DNA from: Cyanophora paradoxa CCMP329
Taxonomy: Eukaryota > Plantae > Glaucophyta
Direction: 5' to 3'
DNA: 64,000 bases
NCBI GenBank assembly: GCA_004431415.1
Contig: QPMI01000599.1
Location: 220,859-284,858, forward strand
Shown: positions 11,621 through 56,073 of the stretch, one piece after another
Layout of the letters: every line of letters starts with the position of its first letter
Numbering within the stretch: position 1 is the stretch's first letter
Program-made: the position numbers and the translations under genes
Notes under the pieces: model-generated
Told to the model about the DNA's origin: nothing
Database searches by the model: none
Seen by the model: the letters and a program-made list of their open reading frames with translations, nothing else

Positions 11621-12235
11621 CCCCCGGGCCCTGAATCCCCGCCCGCCCGCCCCCGGCCCGCTCCAGCCCGGTACCCACGGATCCGGAGTCCACCCGCGGG
11701 GCCGCATCCAGCGCACCCTCGGGCTCTAGACCTGGCGGAGGCCGTACGCGTGCCACGGTGCGTACACGTACGGGACAGCTCTGCAGCTGGAGCAGCTGCA
11801 GACTGATTCGAGCGGCCCGGCTATCAATACTATATTAATATCAATCTATAATATCTGTATAAAGCTCGAGAAACGTACACTTCCTTCCACAAGCCTTGAA
11901 GAGTATTTTATATCGATGTCGCGCGCGTAGTATTTGTATTTTCTGTGGTTATTGTTTTTGAATTTGTACTTGTATGTATTATAATTATAGGTCTATAGTT
12001 ATATAGCTAAGCTAGCTAGTACACGTAGATCATGTAGTATTTAGTCTAGTCGTAGTATTTTCGCAGATCTAGAGCTTCGGGCTCGAGGGTGTGGGGGATC
12101 TTTTTGCATGCGCAGATTTTGCAGTATTTTAATTTTTTGTACGTTTACATGTACATGTGGGTATATAGGCTGAAATTAAGGGTACTACGGTACCGGTCAT
12201 TTCACGTACGTTCTTTCTGCTCGCTTTAAGGGCTA

Positions 12236-14443
12236 CCGTGTAACACTTAAGTAATGCGCGCACTTAAGTAATGCGGTACCAAATTAATGCGTTTTTCGCT
12301 GGCAAAACGCATTAATTTGGGACCGCATTAATATCGAAACGCTAAGAAACTGCTGTACATGTATGTCCCCCCCTACTGCAGCCAAAAAGCTTCAAAACGC
12401 ATTAATTCGGTGCCGCATTATTATCAACAAGATCCGTGCTCCTGCGGAGCACTAAGTACGGCGAAGCCTCGCGGACGCCCTCGCCGCTGTTACAGTAGGC
12501 CTATATATATAGGGCACTCAGCGACTGGCCAGCGGCCTGGCCGATCGCGAACAGCTTTCTGCAGCTGGCTGGAAGCTGGCTGGCTGACGGCCAGTCCAGC
12601 TAGCGCTGGCCGGCTAGAGGAATATTAATTTACTGAGGAACTAAAGGGTGGAGCAGATTGAGAAGAGATTAATTATAATATTGTTGGGAAGGAGGCCCGG
12701 GAGGGGCGAGGTTCTCGCGGCCAGGCGCATGCACAGAGCTTGCGAATCGCTTAAACAGAATCTCGCGATCGAATGTATATAGCATCGATGTGCGGGGCTG
12801 CGGAGGCGAGGGCGCGCGGAAAGACGTGCAGGTCCATGCAGGATCGAATTTTCGGGGTCGGCTGGATTCTCGCGCCCTGTCGCGTCCTCGGAGCTCGCGA
12901 AAAGCTTAACAAAGATCTCAAATTACTATTGTAGCGATGCGCACGCGCGAGGATGCGAGGGCGCGCGGAAAGCTGTGCAGGTCCGTATACGTACAGGATC
13001 GAATTTTCGGGGTCGGCTGGGTCCTCGCGGCCCGGCGCATACGCAAAGCGTGCGGAAGTCTTTGCCTACATCTCAAATGCTTATGCTATTGTTCCGCGCA
13101 TGCGCCGCGGCGTGGGCGCGCGGAAAGATGTCCGGGTCCGTGCAGGATCGAATTTTTGCCGTCGGCTGGGTTCTCGTGCTCTTTCGCGTCTTCGAAGCTT
13201 GTGGAAGGCTTTGATAAAATCTCAAATGAATATTGTAGCGATGCGCATGCGCGAGAATGCGAGGGCGTGCGGAAAGATGTTCAGGTCCGTACAGGATCGA
13301 ATTTTCGGGTCGGCTGGGTCCTCGCGGCCTGGTGCATTTAGAGACCGTGCGGAAGTCTTCTTCTACATCTAAAATGCATATGCTATCGTTCCGCGCATGC
13401 GCCGCGGCGTGGGCGCGCGGAAAGATCTCCGGGCCTGTCTAGGATCGAATTCTTGCCGTCGGGTATGTCCAGGATCGAATTTTTGCGTCGGCTGGGTTCT
13501 CGTGCCCTGTCGCGCCTGCAGAGCTTGCGAAAAGCTTTAAAAAGGAGTCAACTGAAAATTGTAGCGATGCGCTCGCGTGAGGATGCGAGGGCGCGCGGAA
13601 AGTTGTGCAGGTCCGTCCAGGATCGAATTTCCGGGGTCGGCTGGGTCCTCGCGGCCCGGCGCATTTAGAGACCGTGCGGAAGGCTTCTTCTACATCTCAA
13701 ATGCTTATGCTATCGTTCCGCGCATGCGCCGCGGCGCGGGCGCGCGGAAAGATCTCCGGGCCTGTCTAGGATCGAATTTTTGCCGTCGGGTACCTTCCTG
13801 CGCTCTTCCGGCTCCGAAAAGCGGATTTCGGGGTGCGGAGGCGCTGCTATGTCTATGCGCGCCCGTACGCATCGATTGCGCGCGTCGCGGGACCGGCCGG
13901 AACCGGCCGGATCAAATTTTCGGCCGACTCTTCGCACTGGAGCGTCGACGGCGCGCGAAATCGGGTTTGCGGCGATGCGCTCGCCCTCGCGCGTCATTCT
14001 GTATCGTTCTGGGGCGTTCCTGGCGCGATTTTGTCGCGGGACCGGGCGGACCGGGTCCCACCTTCTGACTCGGACTGGATTTGTCGGAGGTTAAGAACCG
14101 GAATTGATCCAGAGGAATATTCGATATTCGCGCGACGCCCACGGGAGAGCGGTCGTCTTAGGGGAGCCAGGACGCTAAAATTGGCTCTAGAGAGGTCTGT
14201 GGGGGTTCGGGTGGCTGTGTGACTAGCAGCAATCGCGTCTGTGTCGAGGCAAAATTAATAATTCTGCCTCGAGGGAGTGCGACACGGAAATTATTTAGCA
14301 GGGGGGATCTCGAGTGGAAAAAAAGGTTAAAAAAGGAATTTAGATCGTCGGTTTTTGGGTTTGAGAAAGAGGCTTCGCCTGATACTAGGGGTCCGGGTCC
14401 AAAAACGCATTAATTTCTGGCGCATTAATTAAGTGTTACACGG
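12236..14443. mobile_element. Non-autonomous TIR DNA transposon (Tc1/mariner/pogo-type, TA target), ~2.2 kb
   Basis: Left end TA|CCGTGTAACACTTAAGTAATGCG and right end CGCATTAATTAAGTGTTACACGG|TA are inverted repeats with one mismatch. Subterminal AATTAATGCG/CGCATTAATT repeats are present. The paralogous locus near 25549-25600 is the empty site. No transposase ORF recognised. Confidence 0.88.
12710..13800. repeat. ~149-bp tandem array (about 7 monomers, alternating A/B types) inside the TIR element
   Basis: The anchor GGATCGAATT starts at 12841, 12996, 13145, 13294, 13442, 13472, 13620 and 13769, giving spacings of 155, 149, 149, 148, 30, 148 and 149. Confidence 0.93.
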
Positions 14444-16429
14444 TAGATCATCGGATGCGCGATCGGTGCCAGTTTTCAGTGTGCGATCGGCGAATTCGAA
14501 GCGCGCACGCGCACCCAGCGGTCCCAGCCGCGGCTGGCCATGAGAGAGACCTCGACCCGCTGCCTCACTCTCCAGTTCCACGCGCATGCGCAACAGCTGC
14601 AAATGCAGATCTAGACCCGGCCCCACGTGCACGTGCACCGGCACTAGCTCTGCACTGCCAGCTGCAGGCTGCGGCAGATTCTGCCCCGCGCGCGCGCGGT
14701 GCACGTGCGCATGCGCGACCGGCCCCCGAGATCTAGAGCTCATCCGAAACTCGATCAAGCCGAGCGCGGCCGCGGCGCGCGCATGCGCACGTGCACCCGG
14801 GCCGGCACCAGGAGCTCCGGGGATCCGGCTGGCGCTCGGCTACCGCCGAATATTAATGCGCCGACCTCGGCATATGCATTGTGACGGACGAGGCCTAGCT
14901 ATAGGCCTAGGGGGAGGAGAGCCCGCTCGCCTCGCCCCATGGCCACAGCACCCAAAGCCCGGGCCCGGCCCCGGCCGGGCCGGCCCCCCGGCCCCGGCTG
15001 CGCGCGCCGCCTGCTCACAAGAAGTTGCATGCGCAGCATGCAACAGTCCGACGCCGGACGCCGCCGGACGCCGCCGAAGCTTTTAAGTCGCCGGCGCGGC
15101 CGGACCGTTGGCCATGGTCTCAAGAATATATCGGTGACGCGAGTCCGTCATGGCGTCACCGTGGCCCGTCATGGACGTCCGACCAGGCGCCGGCTAGCGC
15201 TCACCTGAGTTTCAAAGTTTGAACCGGTGGAAGCCTGGGACGGCGCGCCGCGCGCGCCGGCGCTGCCCGCTGCAGGATCACATGAAGCACATGTACAGCC
15301 GGAGCTGGGAGCCTTGCAATTGGACCCGCGGCACTGGCACCGCGGCTTGAAAGTACTAGTGCGAGCAGCGACAATAAGCGCCGCTGGATTTCAAGACAAT
15401 GGCCACGCGATACTTCCTCTTCCGGCCAGCGAAGCGAAAGAGGCTGGAGGCGTTGGATACATAGCCTAGTAGGATGCACACGCATCAGCAATTGCAAATT
15501 AAAGATTCATCGGCGCGAATTCAAAATTTTTAAAGCGCACCCAGCCGGGGGAGACCTCGGCACGCCTTCTCAGCTTCAACTGGCCCCACGTGCACCAGCT
15601 AAACTTGAAATATTAATGAGCTCGGGGCACCCGCGGCCGCTTCGCTGGCCGCAGCCTCGTCCAAACCACGTGCACCTTCTGCCGCCGCCGCCGCCCACGT
15701 GCACCGAAACTAATCGACGAATATATATTGCAATGTATGTATCCTAATCCGGCGCTCGGCGGCACAAGCGGACGGGCGCTACGTGTGCAGTCACATCGCT
15801 ACGTATGCAGGCTAGAGGCCGGCGGCGAGCAGGCTGCGCTTGATGGCCTCCCGCCGCGCGATGAGCTCGTCCAGCGTATCCTCCACCGAGCGCCCGCTCA
15901 GAGGCGCCGGCCCCGCCCCCGCCCCCGCCACGGCCGGCGGCGGCGGCGGCGCCGGCGGCGCGGCCAGCGGGGCGTGGGAAATATTAATGAGCTCGGGGCA
16001 CCCGCTTCGCTGGCCGCAGCCGCGTCCAAACCACCTTCTGCATCCGCCGCCCATGCGCATGCCACCGAAACTCATGATCAACTTGGCAAGCTTATAAAAT
16101 TATCGACGAATATTGCAATGTGTGTAATATTAATTGCAAAGGCCGCGCGCGGCGCCGCGGGTGCTTGGGGCGGCAGGCCTAGGCATGCGCAGGCCCTGAG
16201 GACGCCGCAGGCCTAGGTCACCCGCGGCCGGTTGCTCGCGGCGGCGGGCGCCGGCGTCGACGCCGGGCGCCGGCGGCCGGCGACGTCGTCGCCGATCGCC
16301 AGTCGCGTCGCGACGTCGGACGTCGCGCGGCGCGGCCCGCCGCGGCCCGCGTGGGACGTCGACTCTGAGCTCGCGATCGAGAGGCGGGCCGAATCCGGCC
16401 GCGGACTCCGGAGACTCGGGGAGAGCAGC

Positions 16430-16799: not shown

Positions 16800-16925
16800 T
16801 CACGCCTTCGAATCCCGCCCGTTCCACATAATTCCGATCGATCATGCCCCACCTTGCCTGTATACGCCCCCACAGTGCTGGAGTAGACTAGAGGCTGTGG
16901 CCGGTAATTCACCAAAAAAAAAAAA
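16800..16925 (+). mobile_element. 5'-truncated copy of the SINE at 55872, with poly(A) tail
   Basis: TCACGCCTTCGAATCCCGCCC...GGCCGGTAATTCA matches 55949-56060 with no difference I could find, and is followed by CC plus an A-run. Confidence 0.85.
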
Positions 16926-17533: not shown

Positions 17534-20500
17534 ATGTATACGTATACGCCTCGCCCATGCGCCCGGCTGCGGTTAGCCGCTACCTTCAGTGCGCTGTTCG
17601 CCCTGGCATTGCTTGCTCTGCTGCCGGGCATCGACGCCAGTCACGGGCCGACTGGCCGGCCGGACCTGCCCGCCGGAGCGGAGACCGCCAAGGGCCTGTG
17701 GGCCACCGTGCAGGTGACCCGCTCCTCGTTAGCTATAGCTATGGCCGCGCGCTTCCGAGTCGGAGCTATCGCCTTCGATTCGACTGGCCCAGTGGCATGG
17801 AGGACATACATATATATCCAATTGCAAGCGGAGCCGTACTCGGCGTGCGCCGCGGTGCTTATATATGCGCAGCTAACTCGGCCGCGACCGCAGCGCGTGT
17901 ATGCGGCCTCGACTGCGTCCACGTCGCAGTTCGTCTTCGGCCGGAGGAGCACCCTGTGGCTGGTCGTCGAGTTTAATAACCCGCCCGGCATCACTGAGAC
18001 CATGTTCTCCTGCCTGACTTCCGGCTATCACTCCTGCGCCATCGACGAGAGTGCGATCTCTGAACCGCTTTAATTTCGAGCTAGGCCGCGGCTTACCGCG
18101 CGCGCCGTCACATGTGCAGTCTCCATGCTGGCCCAACCCACCTGCAACCCGTATCTAATCTTGTCGAATGAGGGACGCAACGCTTCCATCCGCGTGCCTC
18201 ACGTGCCACGGTGACCGCGCTGCAGTTGGTCTTAAGGATGGCTGACCCCCTGACTGGTCCCCATGGCCGAAAGGCACCTCACGCCATTCGCCACCGCGGG
18301 AGGGACCGCCTCGGTGCAGTCGCGCCTCTACTTCCGCCACCTGGTCTCGGACGAGGACCCCGTCCTGGAGCGCCTTCGGGTCCCGTTCCTGTGCGCTCTC
18401 TGCATATCTAAACATACATGGATTCAGTTCTTGAATTTTTAATATCGAGGATAAAAAAAACCGCGCCGACGTCCGCTGCGGTTCGCTCCACCGAAACGCC
18501 GACGTCGCGCACAGGAACCTCGCCGGCTGCGACTATCTTAGCTCCAACAAGCAGGAGGTGCGCTGGCTCGCTCAGCTCGCATCTTCAGCTTGCTTCCAGG
18601 CTTCGCTCACAGCCCCGCGCGTCTCGGCAGCTGCAGTACGTCGCGATCGACAACACGACTCTCACGACGAAAGGGGTCTTCTGGGTGGAGACCGACCCGT
18701 CGAACCCGTTCAACAGGGACACCATGATCGACGCGGTGCTCCTCCCTTCGGCGCAGGCCTTCGATTCGAGCCCACTCCGCTCACACACGAAAATTCCAGA
18801 GGATCGAGATTGATCTGGACCCTAGGCTGGCCCCAGAGTCTCTGCAGCTGGTCCGCTTGGCTGACTATAACGTCATACCCCCCGCGAGTTTCCTGATGTT
18901 TCGGCAGATCGGACCGTCGCCGGGCTCGACCGTCTCTGTAAATGACTTCCTCCTGATCGCAGTCGTCTTCAACGGGGTCCTCGTGCGCCCCAACACGGCG
19001 ACGCCGGTCTTCCGCGACTGCGCTCAAGTCCTAGCCCCTGACGCTCGCACCGCAGGACGAGCCTCTCCCTGCGAACTGCACCGTATCGCTCAACCTGTGC
19101 ATGCTTTTACCTGCTCGCTTCTACATTCCTGACTGAGCTGCCGCCCCCGCAGCAACTTCAAGACCATTACCGTCGAGGAGAAGCTGCCGCGAGCGGACGT
19201 GGACGCGCTGGTGGGGCTCTCGGCGGCCATCGGCGGCGCGGGCCTCAGCACCTCCACCGACCAGATGCTCGTCTATCGCCACCAGTGCGCGCGGCTCCCC
19301 TGAGCGTCTGCGTCTGTGTCGCGGGCTCGAGCGCCCGCGGCCGCCGCAGGATCGAGAAGGAGGAGAACGCAAACGCGATCGCGGTGCGGAGTCCCACGTC
19401 GCAGGCCCTCGTCGTCTCTGCCGAGTGCTCCTCCACGTGCGCCCCGCGCCCGAGTTCAAGTTCATGCACTTCTGTGACGCAGTCTGACTCGCGACGATCG
19501 CCAGGGGGATGCGCTTCGCGTCTGTGACGGGAAGCGGCACCAGCAGTTTCTTGAGCTTGTCAGGCGCGCAAAGCTTTTTTGGAGGGCGCCGCTATAGTAC
19601 TGAACGCGGCGAAATTTCGTTTCGCAGCGCCCGGCTTCGTTTTCTCGCCGTGCAAGAAATCCTCGACCTCTCCCACGGGTTGCGAGGCCGGAGTGACCTC
19701 GGTCGCCCTCGACACGCAGCGTCCGTGACCCCGGCCCCTCATCCTCGTGCACGTGCAAGTGAGTAACCTCATGCGCAGCCCCGCGGATGGTTGCCTTCGG
19801 CACCCGCAAGGCCAAGAACTCCGTTTTCTTCAGCGGCGATGCGATCGACATCTGTCCGCGCCGCACCCTTATACATGTACAATTACCCTCGCGAAGCTGT
19901 CGCTGACCGAGCTCCCTCGCCTTGCAGCGGTCGTCTTCTCCAAGCCCGTGATCTACGTCACGAGCGCCGACAACGGGAATCCTTTCGGTTCGCGCGCACG
20001 CCAATGCAAACGTTGAAGTTTTGATCTGAGAGAGGCCGCGCAGCCGTGGGTCGCCCCTACCTGGACCTCAACTCGGGCGGCGAGGCCGCCTTCGTCGGCT
20101 ACTTCCCCAACGATAACACGACGCTGCTGTTCCGCTACCAAGTTGGGGTGCCCGGCCGCGGCCCGGTCTGCTCGCGTCGCGAACGACCTAACCGTCGGAC
20201 GCTCGCGCAGTCTGGACAGTCCACCAATCAGAAGCCGCTCGAAGTCACCCAGTTCGTCGCGAACGGGGCCGTCATCACTTCCCCCAACGGCTTGGACAGT
20301 GCGTTAACGTTTTACGAGAGCCGAACTCGAAATTCTCCGTCGGCTAATCCCGTTCTCGCAGTCGTCGCGAACGACGAGGCTCTGAAGGCGGTTTTACATG
20401 CCAGGAGCGGTTTGACGGCGGCTGGCCTCATCATCCAGCGTTCCAGCTCCCCGAGAAAGGTGCGGACTCGTTGTCGAATTTTGTATTGGCCCAGTACGCA

Positions 20501-25446: not shown

Positions 25447-27405
25447 GTATATACAGGCTGAAGTATAAGTAGGTTAGTTCGCGTTTGTTCTTTTCGGCTA
25501 TAACTTTTATTTGAAAGCTCTGCGCATGCTCGCTTTGATTTGCTCTACAAGGGCTACATCTTGCGATCGGTACCGGTTTTCAGTGTGCGATCGGCGAATT
25601 CGAAGCTGAAGCCGCCGAGCTAAAATATAATCAAGTATACGTACTCAGTGACTAGTACGTGTACAGCTGCGCATGCAGCTGCAGCTGCAGGTCCCCGGCC
25701 CACGTGCACGTGCACCGGCACTAGCTCTGCTGCCAGGCTGCGGCATGCGCAGCTTCTGCCCCGCGCGCGGTGCGCGGCCGGCCGCGCGCGGCCTCGAGCC
25801 CCGAGAGCTCATCCGAAACTCGATCTACTATACTATAGCTATAGCTAGGCTAGCCGAACGCGGCGCACCCGGCCCGGCCGCGGGCCGGCCGGGCACAAGG
25901 AGCGCCGACGCCGGCTGGCGCTCGGCCACCGCCGAGCACGCCGAGCTCGGCATTCTGGAGGACGAGGGGGAGGACTCCCCTGGAGAGCGCTAGCCGGCGC
26001 CCGCTCGCCTCGAGTCCCGCAGCATCCAAAGCCCGGCCCGGCCCGGCGGGCCCGGCCGGGCCGGCCCCGGGCCCCGGCTGCGCGCGCCGCCTCATGCTCT
26101 GCTGCCAGGCTGCGGCATGCGCAGCTTCTGCCCGCGCGCGGTGCGCGGCCGCGCGCGCGGCCTCGAGCCCGAGAGCTCATCCGAAACTCGATCTACTATA
26201 CTATAGCTATAGCTAGGCTAGCCGAACGCGGCGCACCCGGCCGGCCGCGGGCCGGCCGGGCACAAGGAGCGCCGACGCCGGCTGGCGCTCGGCCACCGCC
26301 GAGCACGCCGAGCTCGGCATTCTGGAGGACGAGGGGGAGGACTCCCCTGGAGAGCGCTAGCCGGCGCCCGCTCGCCTCGAGTCCCGCAGCATCCAAAGCC
26401 CGCGGCCCGGCCCGGCGGGCCCGGCCGGGCCGGCCCCGGGCCCCGGCTGCGCGCGCCGCCTCATGAGGCGGCGCGCGCAGCCGGGGCCCGGGGGCCTGCA
26501 ACTGGAGCTGCTCACAAGAAGTTGCAGGCTTGCACTAGTACTGCGGCAGCATGCAACAGTCCGGGATCATGATCATATCCGATGATCCGACGCCGGAGTC
26601 CGGACGCCGCCGGCCCGGCGGGACGCGGCCGGACTCCCGGGACTCCGGAGTCCGGACTCCGGACTCCGGAGTCCGGATCCGGAGTCCGGGTCCAGACTCC
26701 AGAGTCCGGGAGTCGCGAGCCTCGCCGCCCTCGCGAGCCTCGCGATCGGAGTCGCGGCGCCGGCGCCCGGCCGGACTCCCGGGACTCCGGACTCCGGATC
26801 CGGAGTCCGGAGCCGCCGCCGCGGCCGGGCCGGCGCCGCCGGGCCGGCCCGCCGCCGGGCCGCCGGACCGATGGCCAATGGCCATGGTTTCAAGAAAACA
26901 AAGGTGACGCGAGTCCGTCATGGCGTCCATGCGGCCCGTCATGGATCAGGCGCCAGCTCACCTGAGTTTGAACCGATGGAAGCCTAGGCCTGGGACGGCG
27001 CGCGCCGGCGCTGCCCGCTGCAGGATCACATGAAGCGCGGCCGGAGCTGGGACCCGCAGCACTGGCACCGCGGCTTGAAAGTGCGAGCAGCGACAAAAAT
27101 CGCCGGTTTGGATTTCAAGACAATGGCCACGCGATACTTCCTCTTCCGGCCAGCGAAGCGAAAGAGGCTGGAGGCGTTGGATACATCGGATGCACTCGCA
27201 TCACAGCAAAGATTCATCGGCGCGAAAGCGCACTCAGCCGGGGGAGACCTCGGCACGCCTTCTCAGCTTCAACTGGCCCCACCAGCTAAATGAGCTCGGG
27301 GCACCCGCTTCGCTGGCCGCAGCCTCGTCCAAACCACCTTCTGCCGCCGCCCACCGAAACTTATCGACGAATTTTGCAATGTGTGTATCCTAATCCGGCG
27401 CTCGG
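25447..27405. repeat. Composite dispersed repeat, copy B (empty for the TIR element; internal ~372-bp tandem duplication)
   Basis: Homologous to copy A. GCTCTGCTGCCAGGCTG...CGCCGCCTCATG is repeated from 25724 and from 26096. Confidence 0.88.
26590..26812. repeat. Palindromic low-complexity array built of TCCGGA/GACTCC/GGAGTC words
   Basis: GACTCCGGAGTCCGGACTCCGGACTCCGGAGTCCGGATCCGGAGTCC...; similar shorter arrays lie at ~17181-17222 and ~60231-60290. Confidence 0.88.
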
Positions 27406-27848
27406 CTAGCCGACCCGGCCTCCTCCGAGTCTGCCCCCCCGGGCCCTAGGCCTGTCCTGCTCGTGACCAACTTGCACCACTCGCATGGGCATCGCGATCC
27501 GGGGACTTGTATGGCCGCGCGCGGAGCACGTGCGGATCCGCGGATCAGATCCGCCCCTCAGGGCCTCCCGAGTATCGACCTCAGACTTGCCGAATATACT
27601 CAATCGCAAGCAGGGGAAGCTCCAAGTCTAAATTTAAAGATCCCATTGGAAATGCCAGCTATATAGCGATATATGACTAAGCACTGCAGCAACTTCTTGT
27701 GACTATCGCTACTCTGTTCTAGATCTGCCCTGTCTTCATCGTGAAGTTCGGCTCTGTTCTGTTCTGACCCTCGAGCTCAGTGACTCTGTCCCGGAGTCCT
27801 GCTCTAGATTTGTCCTGACGAGCCGAATCTAAGCCATCGAGCTCACCA

Positions 27849-33965: not shown

Positions 33966-34370
33966 TAGAACCACATCGCAATCGCAATCGCTACAGCTAG
34001 CTTTAGGGCAGATCTAGATACATGCCTAGGGAATTTTTGAAACGAAGCCTACCCGCGGCCGGGTCACTCACAAAATGACGGGTCATGATCAGCTGAGACT
34101 CAGCTCATCTCCCGGCCCAGCTCCGAGCTCTTTAAACAATGCTAGTGCATGCATGAGCTCGAGAGCCCGGAATCCGCTGTCAGAATCCGGAAATAGTGGA
34201 GTGCTGCGCGGAAAAAAGGACGTCGCGACCGGACCCTTTCCTGGACTATCCCTTGCAGCGCCTGATCCTGTGGTCGTATAGGGCCCAGACCAAGTGCATA
34301 AGAGCCTGATCCTGTTGACACCGTGCGGGCACGCTAATGTTAACGTCGTTAACAGTCCAAGCCTCCGAAG

Positions 34371-35095
34371 GGTCTCAAGAAAAAAAAACGGTTGACGCGA
34401 GTCCGTCATGGCGTCACCGCGGCCCGTCATGGATCAGGCGCCGGCTCACCTGAGCTTGAACCAAAGGATCCAGGCCATGGGCCGGCGCTGCCCGCTGCAG
34501 GATCACATGAAGCACGGCCGGAGCTGGGACCCGCGGCACTGGCACCGCGGCTTGAAAGCGCGAGCAGCGACAAAATGCGCGGTTTGGATATTCAAGACAA
34601 TGGCCACGCGATACTTCCTCTTCCGGCCAGCGAAGCGAAAGAGGCTGGAGGCGTTGGATACATCGGATGCACTCGCATCACAGCAAAGATTCATCGGCGC
34701 GAAAGCGCACCCAGCCGGGGGAGACCTCGGCACGCCTTCTCAGCTTCAACTGGCCCCACCAGCTAAATGAGCTCGGGGCACCCGCTTCGCTGGCCGCAGC
34801 CTCGTCCAAACCACCTTCTGCCGCCGCCGCCCTCCGCCGAAACTTGTCGACGAATATTGCGATGTATGCATCCTAATCCGGCGCTCGGCGGCACAAGCGG
34901 ACGGGCGCTACGTGTGCAGTCACATCGCTACGTATGCAGGCTAGAGGCCGGCGGCGAGCAGGCGGCGCTTGATGGCCTCCCGCCGCGCGATCAGCTCGTC
35001 CAGCGTATCCTCCACCGAGCGCCCGCTCAGCGGCGCCGCCCCCGCCCCCGCCACGGCCGGCGCCGGCGGCGGCGGCGGCGGCACGGCCAGCGGGG
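34371..35095. repeat. Copy C of the dispersed repeat: the last codons and 3' flank of the coiled-coil gene
   Basis: Near-collinear with 15116-15972 and 26886-27405. It lacks most of the 6-bp palindromic insertions seen in copy A. Confidence 0.9.
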
Positions 35096-38000
35096 GCGCC
35101 GTGGGACGGGCGGCGGCCGCGGTCGTCGCCGGCTCGGCATCCTCTGCCCATGCGACGGCGGCGTGAGCGCGGGCGTGCGCCGGCGCCGAGGCCGGCGGCG
35201 GGTCGCGGGGGAGGCGAGCGGCTCTCCTCGCCCTCGTCCTCGACGATGCCGAGCTCGGCGCGCTCGGCGGTGGCCGAGCGCCAGCCGGCGCTCCAGGGCC
35301 GCCCCGGGTGCGCCCCGTTCGGCTTCGCGCTGCGCGGGCGCTCCCGCCGCTGCCCCGCCGCCCGCGCCGGCGCCTCGTCGAAGTCGTCGTCCCCGAAGTC
35401 CTCTGCGAGCGGCGCCCGCGGTCAGACTTCGCCGGCAGCCCGGCGGGGGCGCCCGACGTCGACGGCGGCGCGCCCGCACCGTACACGTCCTCGTCGGCCC
35501 ACGGCGCGGGCTGGTCGTGCCCCCGCGCAGCTTCGCGGACTGCGGCCGGGAGGGGACCCGCGGCGCGCCCGTCTGCTGCTGCTGCGCCGACGGCGGCCGC
35601 GAAGGTCGCTGCTGGGCCGACGCCGGGCGCTCGGGGCGCGCGCGGAGGCGGCGGCGGCGGCGGCGGCGGCGAGGCGAGGGCGCGGCGCTCGCGCTCGCGG
35701 TCGAGCTGCGGGGCGGCGCTGGGCGCGGGGCCGCCGGCGAGGCCGAGCCCGTCGACGACGACGGGCGGGGGCGGGGCGCGGGGGCCGGCCCCCGCTGCGC
35801 GTGCCGCAGGTGGGGCGCCCCCTGGTGGAGCCCGCCGGGGACCCCGTGCTGCGCCCCCGCCAGGCCCCCAGTGACCGCCGCCGTGTGGCCCCACGCCTGC
35901 GGGCCCCGCGCCGGCGACGCCGGCCGCGCCCGCGGCGGCGGCGACGGCGAGCGCGACCGCGGGCCCGGGATCTGCGGCGCGCCCCGGGGCCCGTCAGCCG
36001 GCGGCCCCGCCCCGGGCGGGGCGGCTCGGACCTGGGCGCCGGGGACGGGCCCCATGGTGACGCGGCCGTCGCGGCCGAGAAAGAAGGCGGCGTCCTTGAG
36101 GACCTCCCCGCCGGCACCGCCACCTGCCCCCGCCGCCCCCGCCCTCAGCGCCGGCGCCCGGCGCCCGGCGCGGGGCGGGCCGGCTCGCCTCGCCGCCCGG
36201 GCCAGCCACGGAGGCCCGCGCCACGGCCCGGTCCACGCGCGCCTCCACGTCCTGCCGGCCCCGCCCCGCCTCAGCCCCCGCCCCGCAGGGGGAGCGGCGC
36301 GCCGGCGGGCGGGGGCGCCTGGAGGAGGTACAGGTTCTCCTCCACCCGCCGCTCGTGCGCCACCGCCGCCGCCGACGTCACGTCCTTCTCCCGCCCCCGC
36401 ATGAACGCCTGCGCCCGCCTGCTCGGCCCGGGCCCCCGAGGCGTCCCTTCCGACCGGGCGGGGCGCACCTGCATGGTGGCCGATCCCGCCTGCTTGGCGG
36501 CCAGGTGCAGCTCGAAGTGCCTTCGAGGGGCGTCAGAGTCGACGGGGGGCGCGGGGCGCGGCAGCGGGGCGCGGGGCGCGGCGCACTCCGCCTTCTCCTG
36601 GGCCCGCCGCCGCTCGGTCTCGCGCTGCCGCCGGCGCCGCGCCTCCGCCCGCACCCGCTGCTCCGCCTCCAGCGCCTCCCGAGCCTGCCGCGCCGGCCCG
36701 CCCGCCCCGCTCGGCTCGGCTCGAGCCGGCGGGCGGGGACGGGAGGGCGGGGAGGGGCGCATGCGCACGGCGAGCGACTCGCCGTCGCGGACGGGGAAGC
36801 GGGCCTGGCCGTGCATGCGCACGTAGGCGCGCGAGGTGGCCACGAAGGGCCGGTCGAGGCCCTGCCGCCGGTCCGCCCGCGCCCGGTCGCCCGCCACGGA
36901 GCCCTCCCACCCGCCGCTCGGCGCGGGAGGTACCTGCGCAGGCAGCCGCCGGGCGGCCGGTCAGCCCGCGAGGAAGGGCCGGGCGGGGCGGGAAGCGGAC
37001 CAGGAGCGGCGGAGGGCGGTCTCCTGCTCGCGCTCGCGGTTGCCGGCGACGGCGGCCTCGAGCGACTCGCGCCACGCCCGCACCGCCAGACGGTCCACCG
37101 CCCCGCCCATCCCCTCCTCCCCCGCCGCCGGCACGCCCCTGCAGAGCGCGCACCCCTCCCCGCCCCCGCCGCCCCCGAAGAGCTCCCGGTAGAGGGCGGC
37201 CCGCTCCGGCTCCGGGGCGGCCCGCCCGCAGCGCCCGCAGCGCTGCTCCCCCTCCTCCTGCGGGCCGCCGCCGCCGCCGCTCGGCCCTCGTCCTCCTCCG
37301 AGAAGAACCGGTACCGCTCCGGCCGCCGCTGCCCCGCCTCCGCCTCCGCCTCGTCCGCTGCTGCCGCCGCCTCCAGCACGGCCGCCGCCGCCGCCGCCCC
37401 CGGCCCCGCGCCGTGCTCGGGCTCGGCCTCCCTGCAGCAGCAGCGAAGGCGCACGTCAGAGGCGAGCGCGGCGCCCAGCGCGGGCCTCGGCTTGCGGACC
37501 GGGGCCGGGCGTAGGGCCCGATGCCGAAGCGCTTGAGGGCCTCCTGCCGCCGCCGCTCTGCCTCCTTGTCCCGCCTCCGCTGCACGGGGGCCCCGCGTCG
37601 GCCCCCGCCCCCGGCGTCCCGCTCCGCGCCGCGGCCGCGCCCCGCCCTCTCCCTACCTTCTCCTTCTTCCACTCCTCGAAGGAGGGCGCCGGCTTGGGCT
37701 CCGAGCGCTCCCGCCGCGAGGCCCGCGCCGCCGCCACCTCCGCCTCCGCCGCCGCCGCCGCCGCCGCCGCCGCGATCGCCTTGCTCACCTGCGCCCCCGC
37801 GGCTCGGCGCGGCGCCGGCGCCTGGGAGGGAGCCCCGCAGCACCTCGCCCTCGACGGCGCGTAGGGAGACGCCGTCGGCCGCCGCCTCCGCCGCCGCTGC
37901 TGGCGCCTCGGCGGGGCCGGCGTCGCTGTGGGCGGCGGGGCCGCGCCGGGCGCCGCCTCCGAGGCGGGCTCCGACCCGAGGGACCGCCGGGAGCCCCCCG

Positions 38001-48156: not shown

Positions 48157-48608
48157 CGCGAGTCCCGTCTGGAGGCACCCTGGCCTCTAGGCCTGCTTTG
48201 GCCTCCGCGCCTTGTCCAGTCGTGCCCTTGTAAATAATTGCTGCGCGTGCATTACAGCTGCAGCTGCATGCGCAGGGTGCCGCTCTTGCGATTCGGGGGA
48301 TATCAAGTACTTGACTCACGCGGCAGGTCAGGGTGCCGCTCTTGAGAGCACGCAGGGTACCGGTGCCGTACTATGGTTGCAAGTCACTGCAGCTGAGCCT
48401 CGGAGCCGGCGCAACTCATGATCACTGAACTTCAAAGGCTTCGGAAGTTAAATACCATGCATATATGGCCATGGTAACGTTCGAAATGCGGCACTCATGC
48501 ATATATGCTATATGATCAGAACTGGGTAATTTGCAAGGGGGGGTACCCCTCCCTTGCTCCCCTGGCCTGGTGAATTGGTGCTGCGTATATACGTATACGT
48601 ATACGTAT

Positions 48609-49115
48609 GCCCCGCCCCGGCGCCGCCGCTGTCCGAGGCGAGCTGACGCCTCGACCGCGGCTCTGCGCAGGCTATGCGCAGAGCCGGGCCCCACCTGCCG
48701 CTCCGCCCGCTTTCCCGCCCGCCGCCCCGCCCGCCGCCTCAGCTTCGTCGACTCCAGGTTCGCCCCGGCCCGCCGAAAGCGCTGCCGCTGCGCACCTCAC
48801 CCGGCCGCCGCCGCTGGGCCCCGCCCCGGCGCCGCCGCTGTCCGAGGCGAGCTGACGCCTCGGCCGCGGCTCTGCGCAGGCTATGCTCAGTGCCGGGCCC
48901 CACCTACCGCTCCGCCCGCTTTCCCGCCCGCCGCCCCGCCCGCCGCATCAGCTTTGTCGACTCCAGGTTCGCCCCGGCCCGCCGAAAGCGCTGCCGCTGC
49001 GCACCTCACCCGGCCGCCGCCGCTGGGCCCCGCCCCGGCGCCGCCGCTGTCCGGGGCGAGCTGACGCCTCGGCCGCGGCTCTGCGCAGGCTATGCGCAGG
49101 GCCCGGCCCCACCTC
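48609..49115. repeat. 209-bp tandem repeat, ~2.4 copies
   Basis: GCCCCGCCCCGGCGCCGCCGCTGTCCG starts at 48609, 48818 and 49027. Confidence 0.92.
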
Positions 49116-49788
49116 AGGGCCTGCCGCTCCATTCGCTTCCCCGCCCGCCGCCCCGCCTGGGGCCCCGGGCCCGGGCCCTCTGCTTCACCTTGTGTACATG
49201 TTCAAGTACCCCCCCTTGCACCTCCGCGCGCGGCCCGCACTTGCCGCGCCGGGCGCGGTCTGCTAGTATAATGAAGCCGTACTAAGGTGAACTTCGCGGC
49301 CGCCGCAGCTAATTTATAACCCGGCTTCCGAGTTCCGACTCGCCGTGGCCAGATACGTTGTTTAAACGGTTAATAAATAATACGTCGGCTATAGGTAGGC
49401 ATTTTGATTCCAACTATGACAAAGTAATGAAAGCTACTAACTCTTTATCTATATCTATAGGCTAACTATTGCAATTGAATGAAGAGAAGAGGCCGCTTAC
49501 TCGAGGCGTCGAGGCCGCGGGCCTCAAAGGACGTCGATCCCTCTGCAGCTGCCTGGCCCGGCCTCTCGAGATTGGAGTTCGGGGGGAATGCATATGCATG
49601 CCACGTGCACGCGAGGAGCAGTAAGGCCTCCACGCCGATGAGGCGTGAGAAGAAGGCGGAAGGGCGAGGAGGAGGAGGGGGCGGGCGACGAGGGGGCGGG
49701 GAGGGCGCGAACTGCGAAGGTGCCGGCCGCCGGGCCGGATCCGGAGGCCCATTGCGGCTTCCCGAGCCGCCCCGCACCTTAGCCGACG

Positions 49789-51029
49789 CTAAGGCGCCAG
49801 GAAGATCGCTTTCTGCCTCCGGTACTGCGCCAGGGGCCGCGCATCAGCCCGGGGTACAGAAACGCCGGGGGGGGTACGGGGGCACGCCTCGTCCAGGCGG
49901 AGCTTCGCGTAGGAGAGGTAATCGAAGTCGATGGCCGAGTGCCGCGCCTGGGGGTACAGCATGAGCTGGGCTCCTAGGAGGGCGGGGGTGGAGGGGTACG
50001 CGGTACCTGCACGACTGCCCATACCCCCCAGTACACGTGGGCGAGGAGGCCCCAGCGGGTGACTTCCCGGTACATCTCATCCAGCTCGGTACCCGTGGCC
50101 TCCCGCCCTACCCGGGGTGCCCGTATCTGTGAGAAGAAGAGGAGCGGGGAGGGCGGCGGGCTTACCCGTCGCCTCGAGGAAGTACGGCCTGCGGAGCGAA
50201 GAGAGTGAGGAGAGGGTGGGAGGGGAAGGACGGGGGTACGGGTAGGTCCACACTTGAAGAAGCGGTACTGGGCCTAGGCCTCCCGGTCGGGGTAGCACGA
50301 GTAATCACACTCGAAGCCGGCGTACTCCTAGGAGAAAATTTCCCGGAAGGGGGAAGGGGAGTGAGGGAAAGGAAGGCCGGCCGGGGGGGCGGGGGGGAGG
50401 GGAGGGGGGTACGGCCCGACCTGGAAGTGGTTGCCGATGTCGAATCCACGCGGGGCGCCCTTGCCGTACTCGTAGTCGATGATGTACATGTGCTCTGGGG
50501 GTGCGGAGCGGAGCGGAGTGGGTGAGGGGTACGCCCGCATCTCGTCTGCAGGGGGGTACGCACTGGTCCCGTCGTGGAGAAGGATGTTGCCGGAGAGAAG
50601 ATCGCAGTGGGCGAAGACGAGGGGGGAGGGTACGGCCGCCAGCGCCCCCCGGAGCTCCTCCACCTGAATCGCGGGTTCGAATCCCGGGCGGTCCCGATTC
50701 CCCGCAGGCTCACACCTCACGCGCGACGGCCGGCAGATCGACCGCCGCGAGCGCGGCGCGCTGGTCGTCACGCGTGAACTCGCAGCCGCGCGCTGCGCGC
50801 GCGTGCGCGGGGCACGTTCAGACGGCGCGGGGCGGGGCGGGCGGGCGGGGAACCGGCGGGCACCGATCTCCAGCCAGCGCTGGATTGTGGGCCAGAGGGC
50901 GTCGCCGGCGGGGAGCGGCACGTCGGTCCTGTGCAGCCGCGCGAGGCTGCGCGCGATGAGCGGCGCCAGCGTCGGGTCCGCCATCTCTGCGGCGGCGGCG
51001 GCGTCGGAGGCGGCGGCGGCGGCGGCGGA

Positions 51030-51064
<35 letters not shown>

Positions 51065-51131
51065 TGCCGCTGAGGCTGCAGGCGCTCTCGTGCGCACCCT
51101 CGGGCCTCAGAGAGCGGTACGGAACGAACTC
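49789..51131 (-). pseudogene. Ethanolamine/choline kinase, apparently 5'-truncated, with an in-frame TAG
   Basis: EFVPYRSLRPE/EMADPTLAPLIARSLARLH, Brenner motif FAHCDLLSGNIL, IIDYEYG..RGFDIGNHFQ/EYAGFECDYSCYPDREA*AQYRFF, SHVYWGVWAV, SAIDFDYLSYAKLRL. Stop at 50274-50276; no N-terminal lobe exons recognised upstream. Confidence 0.8.
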
Positions 51132-51649
51132 CTGTGCGCTCGAGGGGGACTTCACGCCGCGGCGCAAGCTAAGCTGCGCGCGCCCGGCGACGAGAGCTGA
51201 AATGCGCTTACGGAATTGCCCATTAGCAAGCTCCTACGCCTGGTTGGCATCCGATGATCCCTGCAGCTGATCATGAGTTCCTTCCGAAAACCGGGTGATC
51301 GCGGGTGATTCATGATTTGATCGGAGCCTGAGCATGTGGGGTACAAAGAAGGTTTGCGTCCGGGTACACCCACACAAGGCTCGCGGTTGCCAGACTGGAA
51401 GCCGGCGCCGGCCAGTAGAGGCAACAGGCTTCGTGTCAATGACGGATAACCGCTGGTCAAAGCCCTGCAGTTGAGAAGCAGAACTTCGGAAGTAACGGCC
51501 GAAGCTTGCGGTAACGCCCCGGCTGCCGGTGGGACAGCGCCAAGTCGATGCCGTGATGGAGCGGTTGGCATATGATGTAACGCTTGTCGACCAGGCGCGC
51601 CTGGCTCCGGGACCCCGTGGCTCTGCCCTTGCCTATAGCTACGCAGCGC

Positions 51650-54600
51650 GCTTTTGACAGCTGCCGGCCCCCCGACCCCGGCCGCGGGCCTCATCCACGA
51701 GCTTCTTCCTCGAGCGCGAGCTGAGGCGCGGGCGCGGGCGCAGCTTCTCTCGGGGGCGCTTGAGGTGACGAGGCAGGAAGGCTACAGCGTCAGTATGGAG
51801 CACGGGGTCGGCGGCTCCGCGGAAGTGAGCGTCCGAGTCGAGACCAAGTGCGCACTGCCGCGCACTGTTCGGCTGACCTGCGATCCGCGTGCGCGTTGCA
51901 CCCACAGCGCTCCTCCCGACGCGCGCGCGGCAGCGATCGGCAGTCGCCTTTCACGGCTTTCCGCGTCGTGACCGAGTTCGAAGGGATGCCGGCCGCTTTT
52001 GCCACGTCCGCCATCCTCGGCCGCTCACGCACCACGGTTCCCTCCCGCTCCGCGCCAGGCGCCGGCCCCGCTGGCCTCGGCTAATCAGCGGAGGGCCCCG
52101 GCAGGATTTTAACGAGTTCGTTCTCCGTGAGACTCTGGTGGCTGAGCTGGAGCGAGCACCCCCTGAGGTTCGCGCGATTGGACGGGGCGGGCTTCGCTAC
52201 GCGCGCACGCGCACGCGCGCTCCAGATCGGTTTGATCTGGCCTCATTTGAATCGCCAGGACCCCCAAAACATCGGCGCCGTATCCGTATATGAGGACCAC
52301 GCGAGCTACTTCGGTACCCCCCCCCTTTCCTCCCTCGAAGCCCCCCGACCGCCATCCGCCCCCCCCCCTCCCCCCCCCCCCCGCCCGCCCCCTCTCCACC
52401 GCCAGGCTACGTTCTGGAGAGCTACATGCTGCGTGCGACCCGCAGGCCCGCCCCCGTCCCATGCACCTGCAGCCCTCCTCCCGCCCTTCTGAACACCGAC
52501 CGCAGGCTTCCGGACGGGTCTGCGTTCGCGATTCGGGTACCCGTCGAGTGGGAGGGGGAGGCCTGGTCCGCGCCCCTACCCCTTCGCAGCTTCCGCTTTC
52601 GGCAATTAGAGTTCTTCACCTAACGGTACCCGCCCGGCATGCGCAGGACCCCACGGCGCTACCGGGAGAAGATTCGGGCCCTCTCCGCGTGGCACGTTGC
52701 CGGTACCCCCCGCGGCTGCCGGTGCGGCTACCCCCTCTCCTCGCCCGTACCTCCCCCCCCCCCCCCCCCCCCCCCCCCGGCCCGAGTCACCGAACCACCT
52801 GGATCACGCCTGAGCGCGGCGCTGTACCCCCAGGTTCACATACATCGGCCTTGAGAAGGCTTCCTTGATCTTCTCCTTCCTCCCCCTCTACGGCGCGCCA
52901 GTCCCCCCCTCCCTGACTCCCGCTCCCCCTCACGGTTTCTTTCTTTCGCCACAGCCGTGAGGCAGATTTTGTGCCGAATGGTGGCGAAGTACATCCTCCG
53001 AGTCCGCCGCGTCGTCTTGAAGGCACGCTCGCAGCTTCGGCGCCCCTTGCCTTGCTCTTTACTACTTCGCCCGACACTTGCTGCCCTCGTTTCTTGCGCT
53101 GACCGCCCCGCGTTTTCGCCCGCAGGAGTTCGCCAGCGATGGCTGCGCCGAGATTCGGCCCCAGCGCTCCTTCCTCTTTGCCTCGGGGAGCGCAGGGGTA
53201 CCCCTGCACTGGAGCAGCCGGGGGCTCTCGCGGTCCCTGGGGCTGTCCCCCGCTGACGAAGCCGGAGCGGAACCCTCCTCCCGATCGCCCTTCGTCCTTC
53301 ACTCCTGCGCCCCCCCGCGGCGCGCGCCGGGCGCGGCCACTCTACCCGTCCGGGAGGCGCGGGAGGCGCCGAAGGCCACGGAGCTTTTTTTCGACCTCGT
53401 CGGCATCGATCTCGAGGCCCGCCCCCCCCCCCCTCCCCCCCCCCCCCCCCCCCCCCACCCCGCCCTTCCCTTCCACCCCCCCCCCCCTCAAATCGGGCGC
53501 AGCGGCGGGCGAGCGAAGCCCCCTGGTCGCTGGATGGGGGCGCCTCCTGGGTCGCTCCTACCCCCCTCAGCCCAGACTCCCGCCCAAGACTGGACGACGG
53601 ATCGGATCTATCCAGGGCGGGGCAGGTGGGTACCCTCTCTCATACGAGGCTGCATCTCTGGCCGGCCCGACGCGAGTCGCCCGGTGGGCGGTCTCAGCTG
53701 TCGCGCTCTGACGGGTACGGTTCCTTGTTCCCCTCTAGGTGTTGCGGGCCGGGGCGAGGAGGTTACAAATGAGCACAAACCCCGCCGCCCTCAACATGGT
53801 AATCCCCCCCCCTCCCCCCCCTCCCCCCCCCTCCCCCTTTCCTTCCCCCTCCCCTTCCCCGCCTCCCACTCCGCCCCGAATCCGAATCAAAGAAACGGAA
53901 GAATCAGCCTATTAGACGTCCTAGGCAGTCGGCCGAGGCGTACCGTGATCCGGTACCCCGCCCCCCCGCCTCTGCCGGGCGCCCTCCATCGCCCGCCTTC
54001 ACTCTGCTCGTTCTCACGTCGACCCGCCTCGCGCGCGTGCGCACTGCGCAGTCCGCGGAGGCGTGCCGGGCCTCTCTGGAGCTGTCAATGCGGCTGGAAA
54101 CGATGTCGCTCGCCGAGTCCGTAGGGGGCCACGGCGGGGCGCGAGGAGAAGAGGGGGGCGAGGGGGAGGCAAGGGGCGAGACGTACCCCCCGGAGGTCGG
54201 CGCGGTGGGGGACATCGAGTTCGGACCGCAGCCGTTGGGCGACGACGCGAGCGGGTCCGACTTCGACGTACCCCCCTCGCTGCCCCGATCCGCCCTCACG
54301 CCCGGGGCCGCCCCCGCAGCTTCAACACGTACCTGAACGAGTTCCTGCCCGGCGCCGCGAAATTCTTCCCCGGGTGCGAACCGCGGATCATATGAGCCGC
54401 CCGGCGCCCTCGCTTCGCCTGGCGCCGCCGTCTCTCTGTGCCCCTCTTCTTCAGCTGAACGCCCCTTTGAATGTGCAGCGTACCCCTCAGCTTCGTCAGC
54501 ACCGTCCTCCGGGGTACTCGTTTTCCTCTCTTTCCCTTTTCCCCACCCACCCTCGCCCAAAACTCGACCCCCCCAGCTCACGTGCTCCCCATCTCTCGCC

Positions 54601-55618
54601 CTTAGAGAGCTGGCGGGCGCTGAAGGAGGAATCCAAAAAGGGGTACAGGATGCGGGCTGCGGACGCGAAGGAGCGCACGACCCCGACGCCGCCCGTACCC
54701 CCCCACGCCATCGTCGACGCCCCGCCCCCCGCCTACGTGGAAGATCCCAATTCCTCCAGAAAGGTCTGCGGTACCCGCCGCGGATCACTGTACCCCCCTG
54801 ATCGCCCCTCCTTTCGAAGTCGCGGGCGCGGCGCTGCTCGGATGCTCTGGCAGAGGATGAGGCAAGGACGCCCCGCCGGGTCTGTACCCCCCGGGAGAGT
54901 GCCCCCGGACCCTCTTCGAGGCCCCGAGCCCCCGCTGGGTCCGCCCTCCGACGCACTATTTAGAGTATCCCCCCTGGCCCTGCCGATGCGGCCGTCAGGG
55001 TTTCGACTTTCCTGAATATGCGGCTCGCGGACGCAATCAAATCCCAGCCCGGGTCAGCTGCGCCCCCCCGGGGCCCCCGCCCCGCCCGATCCTGCGCGCA
55101 CAGATCGAATCTCACTCTCTCCTCTCGCAGGGTACCCCTGGGACTGATCATCGATCGACTGAGGGGTACGCGCGCACTGATTCTTTCGGAGCAGCGGCTG
55201 CCCTCTAATTACTCTCCCCGCATGCGTAGCGGAGTGGGACTCGTCATCGGAAGCGTCGAGGGCGAGATTCGAACCCGTCTCTGCAGCCGCCGCCGCTGCG
55301 CTGGGCTTGAGCCCGCCCCCCCTTGGCCGGGCTTCCCCCATGAGGGTGGTTGACCAGTCTCCTGCCGCTCCCGCCCCCCACGGCGCTCAGCACCCCGCCG
55401 GTCCCGCCCCGGCCCCCAACCCAGAGCTCGTCCCACGCGGGCCAGATCGCAGCACGAGGCGGCCGTCGATCCAGCCCATCCTTCCCGTCCCCATCCCCGG
55501 GGCTCCGGCCCCGGCGATCCCCCCCCTGGTGTTTTCTCTAGATCTTCCCACGCCCCCGTCCGGGACGTCGAGCTCCGCCTCGAATCTGGCGACGTTCGGA
55601 GAGATAGCCTACAAGTGA
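51650..55618 (+). pseudogene. Series of spliced-looking coding fragments of unclear identity, some with stops
   Basis: Short exon-like pieces (DFNEFVLRETLVAELE, IGAVSVYEDHASYF, FRFRQLEFFT*, EAPKATELFFDLV, FNTYLNEFLPGAAKFF) are flanked by GTACCC donors and CAG acceptors. I could not assemble one intact frame. Confidence 0.35.
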
Positions 55619-55871
55619 AGGCCCCTGGGGCAGCGGTACCCGCCCCCGCCCTCTCCCCGTGCGCCCACGGCCCACAGCCATGCCTTTCTGTATGAAGACC
55701 TGTGACCGGCGGCCTGTATTAGAAGCATGAATATTATCGATAATCATCAGAATTCGAAGTATTTGCGTATTTAAGCTAAAGACAATGTATAGATCTGTCA
55801 TCTATCTATTGAGATTATATATATATAGCTATATATATTCGAGATTCACTGAGTCATTGAGCTATGAAGCC

Positions 55872-56073
55872 CCCGCTCATAGCGGTGTGGTTATCATACA
55901 CGCTTTTCATTTCATGCCTTCCGTGTTCGAATCGCCCTGCGATGAGAATCACGCCTTCGAATCCCGCCCGTTCCACATAATTCCGATCGATCATGCCCCA
56001 CCTTGCCTGTATACGCCCCCACAGTGCTGGAGTAGACTAGAGGCTGTGGCCGGTAATTCAAAAAAAAAAAAAA
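55872..56073 (+). mobile_element. tRNA-like SINE with poly(A) tail and 9-bp TSD
   Basis: TATGAAGCC lies at 55863-55871 and 56074-56082. A-box-like TAGCGGTGTGG at 55880; B-box-like GTTCGAATC at 55925; 14-A tail at 56060-56073; second partial copy at 16800. Confidence 0.85.

Follow-up and report, generated by a model that had tools for sequence, protein, structure and literature searches.

A premature stop codon within a palindromic six-base insertion in a 5'-truncated ethanolamine/choline kinase copy of Cyanophora paradoxa

How does a kinase gene whose exon borders, reading phases and catalytic motifs are in order come to be interrupted by a single in-frame stop codon, and was the gene still working when this happened? 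The question is raised by a locus on the minus strand of the 64,000-nucleotide stretch of Cyanophora paradoxa DNA analysed here, referred to below as the window.

The kinase copy and its paralogue

The 5'-truncated ethanolamine/choline kinase copy spans positions 49789–51131 (minus strand), as delimited by homology and by the published model tig00021312_g20096.t1. It was assessed exon by exon, in the form of a ten-exon model, and as an unspliced reading frame. All ten surviving exons lie on the minus strand, and the first of them (51098–51131) was placed by its match to the paralogue described below, from about residue 149 onwards. Borders and phases define exon 2 (50864–50986, also matching the paralogue), exon 3 (50716–50792), exon 4 (50564–50663), in which the catalytic HCDLLSGN is intact, exon 5 (50421–50494), with IDYEY and RGFDIGNHF intact, exon 6 (50254–50327), of 74 nucleotides between AG and GT borders and again matching the paralogue, exon 7 (50166–50188), exon 8 (50007–50107), with the motif HVYWGVW, and exon 9 (49888–49947), followed by a GC-AG intron. 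Exon 10 (49789–49824) was recognised by comparison with the paralogue and contains the TAG that terminates the copy itself, two residues short of the paralogue's end. From 51131 to 49789 the phases are consistent, all acceptors are AG and all donors are GT except for one GC. The 18 splice sites are all intact, the 702 exon bases contain no frameshift, and a TAG at 50276–50274 is the sole break across the 234 codons.

Comparison with the PF01633 family reveals the catalytic HxDxxxxN in exon 4, as HCDLLSGN, and the choline-kinase motif IDxEY...FDIGNHF in exon 5. The uninterrupted frame of the family is broken by the TAG at the cost of the last 80 codons, and the N-terminal lobe (GGITN, LxRxFG, FxNG) gave no tblastn or HMM match within the 64-kb window. 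No N-terminal fragment was found as a separate gene model or short protein, in a search run without a positive control, and the 670 bp 5' of the copy gave no Pfam match; a plus-strand gene seems, by eye, to begin about 670 bp upstream. To judge from its sequence, the window copy is probably a pseudogene of the PF01633 family and not a working member. Its label as an ethanolamine, as opposed to a choline, kinase comes only from the names of its nearest homologues.

Some repeats were observed in and around the copy. Most of the first surviving intron consists of a (GCC)n tract, 25 units long (50989–51063), an inverted repeat (10 bp, loop of 4 bases, one mismatch) runs across the copy's own stop (49797–49774, minus strand), and a GTACCCC motif recurs in the introns of the copy and of its plus-strand neighbour (49800–55700). 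Further away, a SINE-like element of 125 bp with a poly(A) end is found at 16800–16924 and, 98% identical, at 55949–56073.

Two C. paradoxa gene models were matched by the unspliced kinase frame. One of them (P0001, the published model named above) is the window locus itself; it uses a donor at 50310 that skips the stop, thereby dropping 19 residues, and has a short start added, and its entry in EukProt probably represents a false protein. The other (P0002, tig00021434_g21354.t1) is encoded on another contig and is a full-length, uninterrupted PF01633 protein of 381 amino acids. The 233 residues common to both copies are about 90% identical, the motifs are the same and the intron DNA is alignable, whereas P0002 has an intact frame and residues 1–148, and the window copy lacks these residues and has a stop. 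Their synonymous divergence is at least about 0.11 (13 of 121 sites). Beyond what had been described in an earlier note on this DNA, the locus is thus a second copy, devoid of the N-terminal 148 residues or so, beside an intact paralogue. The genomic DNA of the paralogue is not on record and had no match in the metagenomes searched.

The six-base insertion and its class in the window

At the stop, the minus strand reads GAC CGG GAG GCC TAG GCC CAG TAC CGC TTC TTC, and exon 6 translates as EYAGFECDYSCYPDREA, a stop and AQYRFF. The TAG (50274–50276, minus strand), assigned from sequence and exon phase, is in frame in the sixth of the ten surviving exons. It lies within AGG-CCT-AGG (50273–50281, minus strand), a word of the form X-revcomp(X)-X, written X-rc(X)-X below, by which six base pairs were gained. 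The earlier note had read the TAG inside this word, which is confirmed in the window sequence, and had proposed that removal of CCTAGG restores YPDREAQYRFF; the intact paralogue P0002 reads exactly YPDREAQYRFF. It had also considered that orthologues might carry two extra residues at this point, and neither P0002 nor any of the 11 other homologues, Gloeochaete included, shows any additional residue in the stretch from YP to the conserved Q. Since the paralogue and the homologues are without the two extra codons, it is the window copy that gained 6 bp. The proof of an insertion lies in this comparison and not in the motif, because a chance match to X-rc(X)-X exists elsewhere in the copy, at 50483, in the conserved HMYI codons. 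The insert has a slide of 5 bases, which gives six equivalent placements, and in an alternative reading GCCTAG-GCCCAG is a tandem duplication of 6 bp whose halves differ at one base. A non-standard code in which TAG stands for an amino acid was rejected, given that the homologues have no space for two residues and that TAG is the gene's normal end.

Contigs from two DNA runs (X1 and X5) hold the insertion unchanged, which answers the concern of the earlier note that reads might lack it. In both runs a 591-nt contig spans 49903–50493 with 0 differing letters and 0 gaps, its depth equals that of the neighbouring single-copy contigs, and the main contig at the site has the scar allele only, no allele that still bears an element having appeared. 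Two further runs, presumed to be RNA, yielded no contig over the copy. These identical contigs exclude an assembly error behind the insertion; the runs may stem from the assembly's own strain, so that they bear on assembly error and hardly on the species as a whole. Another contig family shows about 52 differences from the window copy and encodes residues of the paralogue (e.g. GMRAPRG). That this family is an allele instead of the paralogue is ruled out by these residues, by the synonymous divergence of about 11% and by the report that C. paradoxa is probably haploid (PMC6704402). Binned depths are consistent with a piece of paralogue contig that covers 50277–50334 in X1 and X5 and ends at the last base before the TAG, which points to GCC as the codon for alanine in the paralogue, as deduced from depth rather than from read bases. 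In X5, an extra depth of 14.5 extends over two bins (50192–50275) and is gone in the next, with none in X1; it would agree with a minor form of the locus that lacks the insertion and ends at 50275, or with a short G-rich piece of unrelated sequence lying over a bin border.

By its form, the kinase insertion belongs to the commonest class of 6-bp indels in the window. Among the 17 six-base indels found between copies of repeats within the window, ten are perfect X-rc(X)-X words and none is a tandem duplication; the scar at 26982 is built on the same CCT/AGG word as the one at the kinase stop. The window contains 303 A/T-containing X-rc(X)-X 9-mers where Markov models predict 11–27 (about 13-fold enrichment), and the enrichment peaks sharply at an X of three bases. 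For a sister class, X-C-rc(X)-G-X, 43 instances compare with an expectation of 1.1 (about 40-fold), other spacer pairs reaching 0–3. The kinase copy itself is poor in scars, with a single true scar over its 1,343 bp versus 4.5–15 per kb in the flanking spacers, and its 641 intron bases contain no A/T-containing scar. Directly upstream of it, scars are present at 51249, 51261, 51481 and 51633.

Near the kinase copy, 8-bp scars of the sister class lie at 48395, 49112, 51249 and 51481. The one at 49112 uses the CCT/AGG word and separates copies of a 209-bp tandem repeat that lies downstream of the kinase copy (48609–49157) and has 2.4 copies agreeing to 96%. The scar load is very uneven among the copies of a three-copy repeat, the first of which (15089–15990) holds most scars, together with several longer nested palindromic insertions, in comparison with those at 26850–27410 and 34340–35120. 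The scars in a large gene at 17.5–24.7 kb seem, by eye, to be mostly intronic. An X-rc(X)-X word at 19747 may sit in an exon of a large ion-channel-like gene (LVHVQ, just 5' of a GT), either by chance or as an in-frame scar. A non-exhaustive search of the literature found no published description of an X-rc(X)-X scar, in Cyanophora or elsewhere.

Candidate origins of the scar

We consider it moderately probable that the locus represents a second ethanolamine kinase copy that was inactivated recently and bears two lesions, namely the loss of its 5' exons and a TAG-writing scar of +6 bp left by the excision of a transposon that duplicates 3 bp of its target. A cut-and-paste element with such a duplication would have inserted at AGG and subsequently excised, each flank being sealed as a hairpin. 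Opening of the hairpins three bases past the tip would produce overhangs ending in rc(X) and X, and the complementary CCT and AGG ends could then anneal and be filled in to yield AGG-CCT-AGG. The insertion of the element would already have been a knockout, and the scar would have failed to give back a stop-free frame.

Two traits of hairpin footprints are seen at the site: the target AGG flanks CCT on each side, and the added CCT is the reverse complement of AGG. The fixed C and G of the X-C-rc(X)-G-X class likewise suit the ends of an element and not random slips of a polymerase. The formation of flank hairpins is well documented for hAT, MULE and Transib elements, and the footprints of Ac/Ds (hAT), Muta1 (MULE) and Transib/RAG share with the scar the target on both sides and the palindromic (P-nucleotide) addition, often joined by microhomology (PMC5499845, PMC5873905). 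These footprints are of variable length, some of them with deletions, whereas the window scar has a 3-bp unit and one fixed form, and the target duplications of hAT and MULE measure 8–9 bp. The target duplication of Transib is 5 bp, and the Tpn1 family belongs to the CACTA elements. According to the accessible parts of the respective reports, Tpn1 (Ipomoea nil, 10.64898/2026.08.24.746626) and mJing (rice, PMC6850418) resemble the scar in their 3-bp target duplication, and their footprints can fix a mutant allele, premature termination included. The same parts describe footprints of 3–5 bp, for the Tpn1 family (10.64898/2026.08.24.746626), or heterogeneous ones, and mention no fixed X-rc(X)-X, in contrast to the fixed form in the window.

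The heterogeneity of documented footprints argues against the excision model, as does the prior GGCC symmetry of the kinase site, which would be equally helpful to a template switch during replication. No convincing transposon with matching ends (terminal inverted repeats and a 3-bp duplication) was found within the 64-kb window. At 12233–14446, nested inverted repeats of 18 bp and 16 bp surround 149/327-bp tandem arrays, with no target duplication seen; this is possibly a non-autonomous element. From the comparison with known systems, we infer that the kinase scar is probably a hairpin-type footprint, although an unusually uniform one. The palindromic 6-bp insertion claimed by the earlier note is upheld, and the term fold-back that it used names one possible mechanism, which hairpin-type excision repair matches at least equally well.

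An origin of the scar free of any transposon, by fold-back or template switching of a polymerase over three bases or by a staggered break mended via hairpins, appears possible but rather doubtful to us. In favour of it, the scar amounts to a minimal inverted triplication, a switch could be primed by the GGCC palindrome, the window yielded no element, and small inverted triplications with the same direct-inverted-direct architecture are documented as replication errors (PMC13334657). However, the documented ones are linked to FEN1 loss and have arms of at least 7 bp, up to kilobases (median 148), with a spacer of about 30 bp between the inverted junctions (PMC13334657), whereas the kinase scar is made of 3-bp units with no spacer. 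Moreover, neither the fixed three-base unit nor the fixed C/G sister class is predicted by such an origin. A slide of 5, as at the kinase site, is expected at 24% of random sites, and most scars identified between repeat copies show no prior symmetry, 6 of the 10 having a slide of 3.

The second reading of the insert implies a two-step change, in which slippage duplicated GCCCAG and a C-to-T transition then made the first CAG a TAG, the palindrome being coincidental. The sequence corresponds exactly to a 6-bp tandem duplication plus one transition, and slippage and transitions are both generally common mutations. Nevertheless, we regard this course of events as very improbable: tandem duplications are absent from the six-base indels of the window, in which scars prevail, and one specific non-CpG change would be needed on a branch whose length is about 0.06 changes per site, methylation in C. 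paradoxa being of CpG only (PMC12344493). The rough odds are about 100 to 1 against it, softened for the small sample, and the scar reading is strongly favoured over duplication followed by C-to-T. That the copy still functions, the TAG being read through or spliced out by means of the donor at 50310, is very unlikely: the kinase motifs are intact and in-frame alternative splice pairs exist, one of which the published model uses, but every bypass splice drops 45–87 coding bases (15–29 residues), always with the conserved YP and usually with the conserved Q, skipping of exon 6 shifts the frame, the N-terminal lobe is missing regardless, and TAG is also the gene's normal terminator.

Order of the lesions and reach of the process

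The state of the sequence suggests that the kinase copy probably died recently, because it has no frameshift and its splice sites and catalytic motifs are intact. Its amino-acid differences spare the conserved columns (2 of 17, P = 0.04), and one exonic indel is seen where about 7 (range 3–12) would be expected had the copy been neutral since duplication (P from 0.16 to <0.001). The substitution test, with 13 synonymous and about 13 non-synonymous changes, does not reject neutrality since duplication (P = 0.14). The tree-based share of changes falling on the window copy ranges from 0.25 to 1.0, two models disagreeing on the polarity of the amino-acid changes, and CpG changes are uninformative as a sign of silencing (4 vs 3).

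Concerning the order of the two lesions, the balance tips a little towards a copy that was born, or made, 5'-truncated first, in which case the scar hit dead DNA and would be silent about functional exons. The loss of the N-terminal residues is a second and sufficient lesion, neutrality since duplication is not rejected by the substitutions, and several scars lie just upstream of the copy. On the other hand, the lack of frameshifts, splice-site losses and intron scars points to a short neutral time, so that either lesion could lead. We give slightly more weight to truncation before the scar, and exon 6 may already have been dead when the scar struck.

Simulation of an X-rc(X)-X scar at every exonic site of the kinase copy produced a stop at 47 of 627 sites (7.5%), the remainder adding two residues in frame. 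The locus shows that the scar process can write a stop, whereas one case does not show that it frequently disables working genes. In the same way, the statement of the earlier note that the process hit an exon and made a TAG stands, in the form of a 6-bp X-rc(X)-X insertion, and the idea that stops are commonly made by it does not follow from one site. A wider reading takes the stereotyped excision scar as an active force on the coding sequence of C. paradoxa, here the first lesion, killing a working duplicate, with about nine in ten exonic hits adding two residues, since +6 preserves the frame. We consider this reading unlikely; if it were true, visits of transposons would routinely insert two residues into proteins and bring about the loss of duplicate genes.

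The kinase copy itself is of little weight, as the intact paralogue remains. Its value is that of a clean and polarised example of insertion, for which the ancestral protein is known, contigs from raw data confirm the event, and strains can be typed by PCR; its stop also reveals what is probably a false gene model in public annotation. The kinase scar shows that such scars are not restricted to spacers and introns. Should working genes be hit by them as well, the usual outcome would be two additional in-frame amino acids, which would constitute a testable route of protein change.
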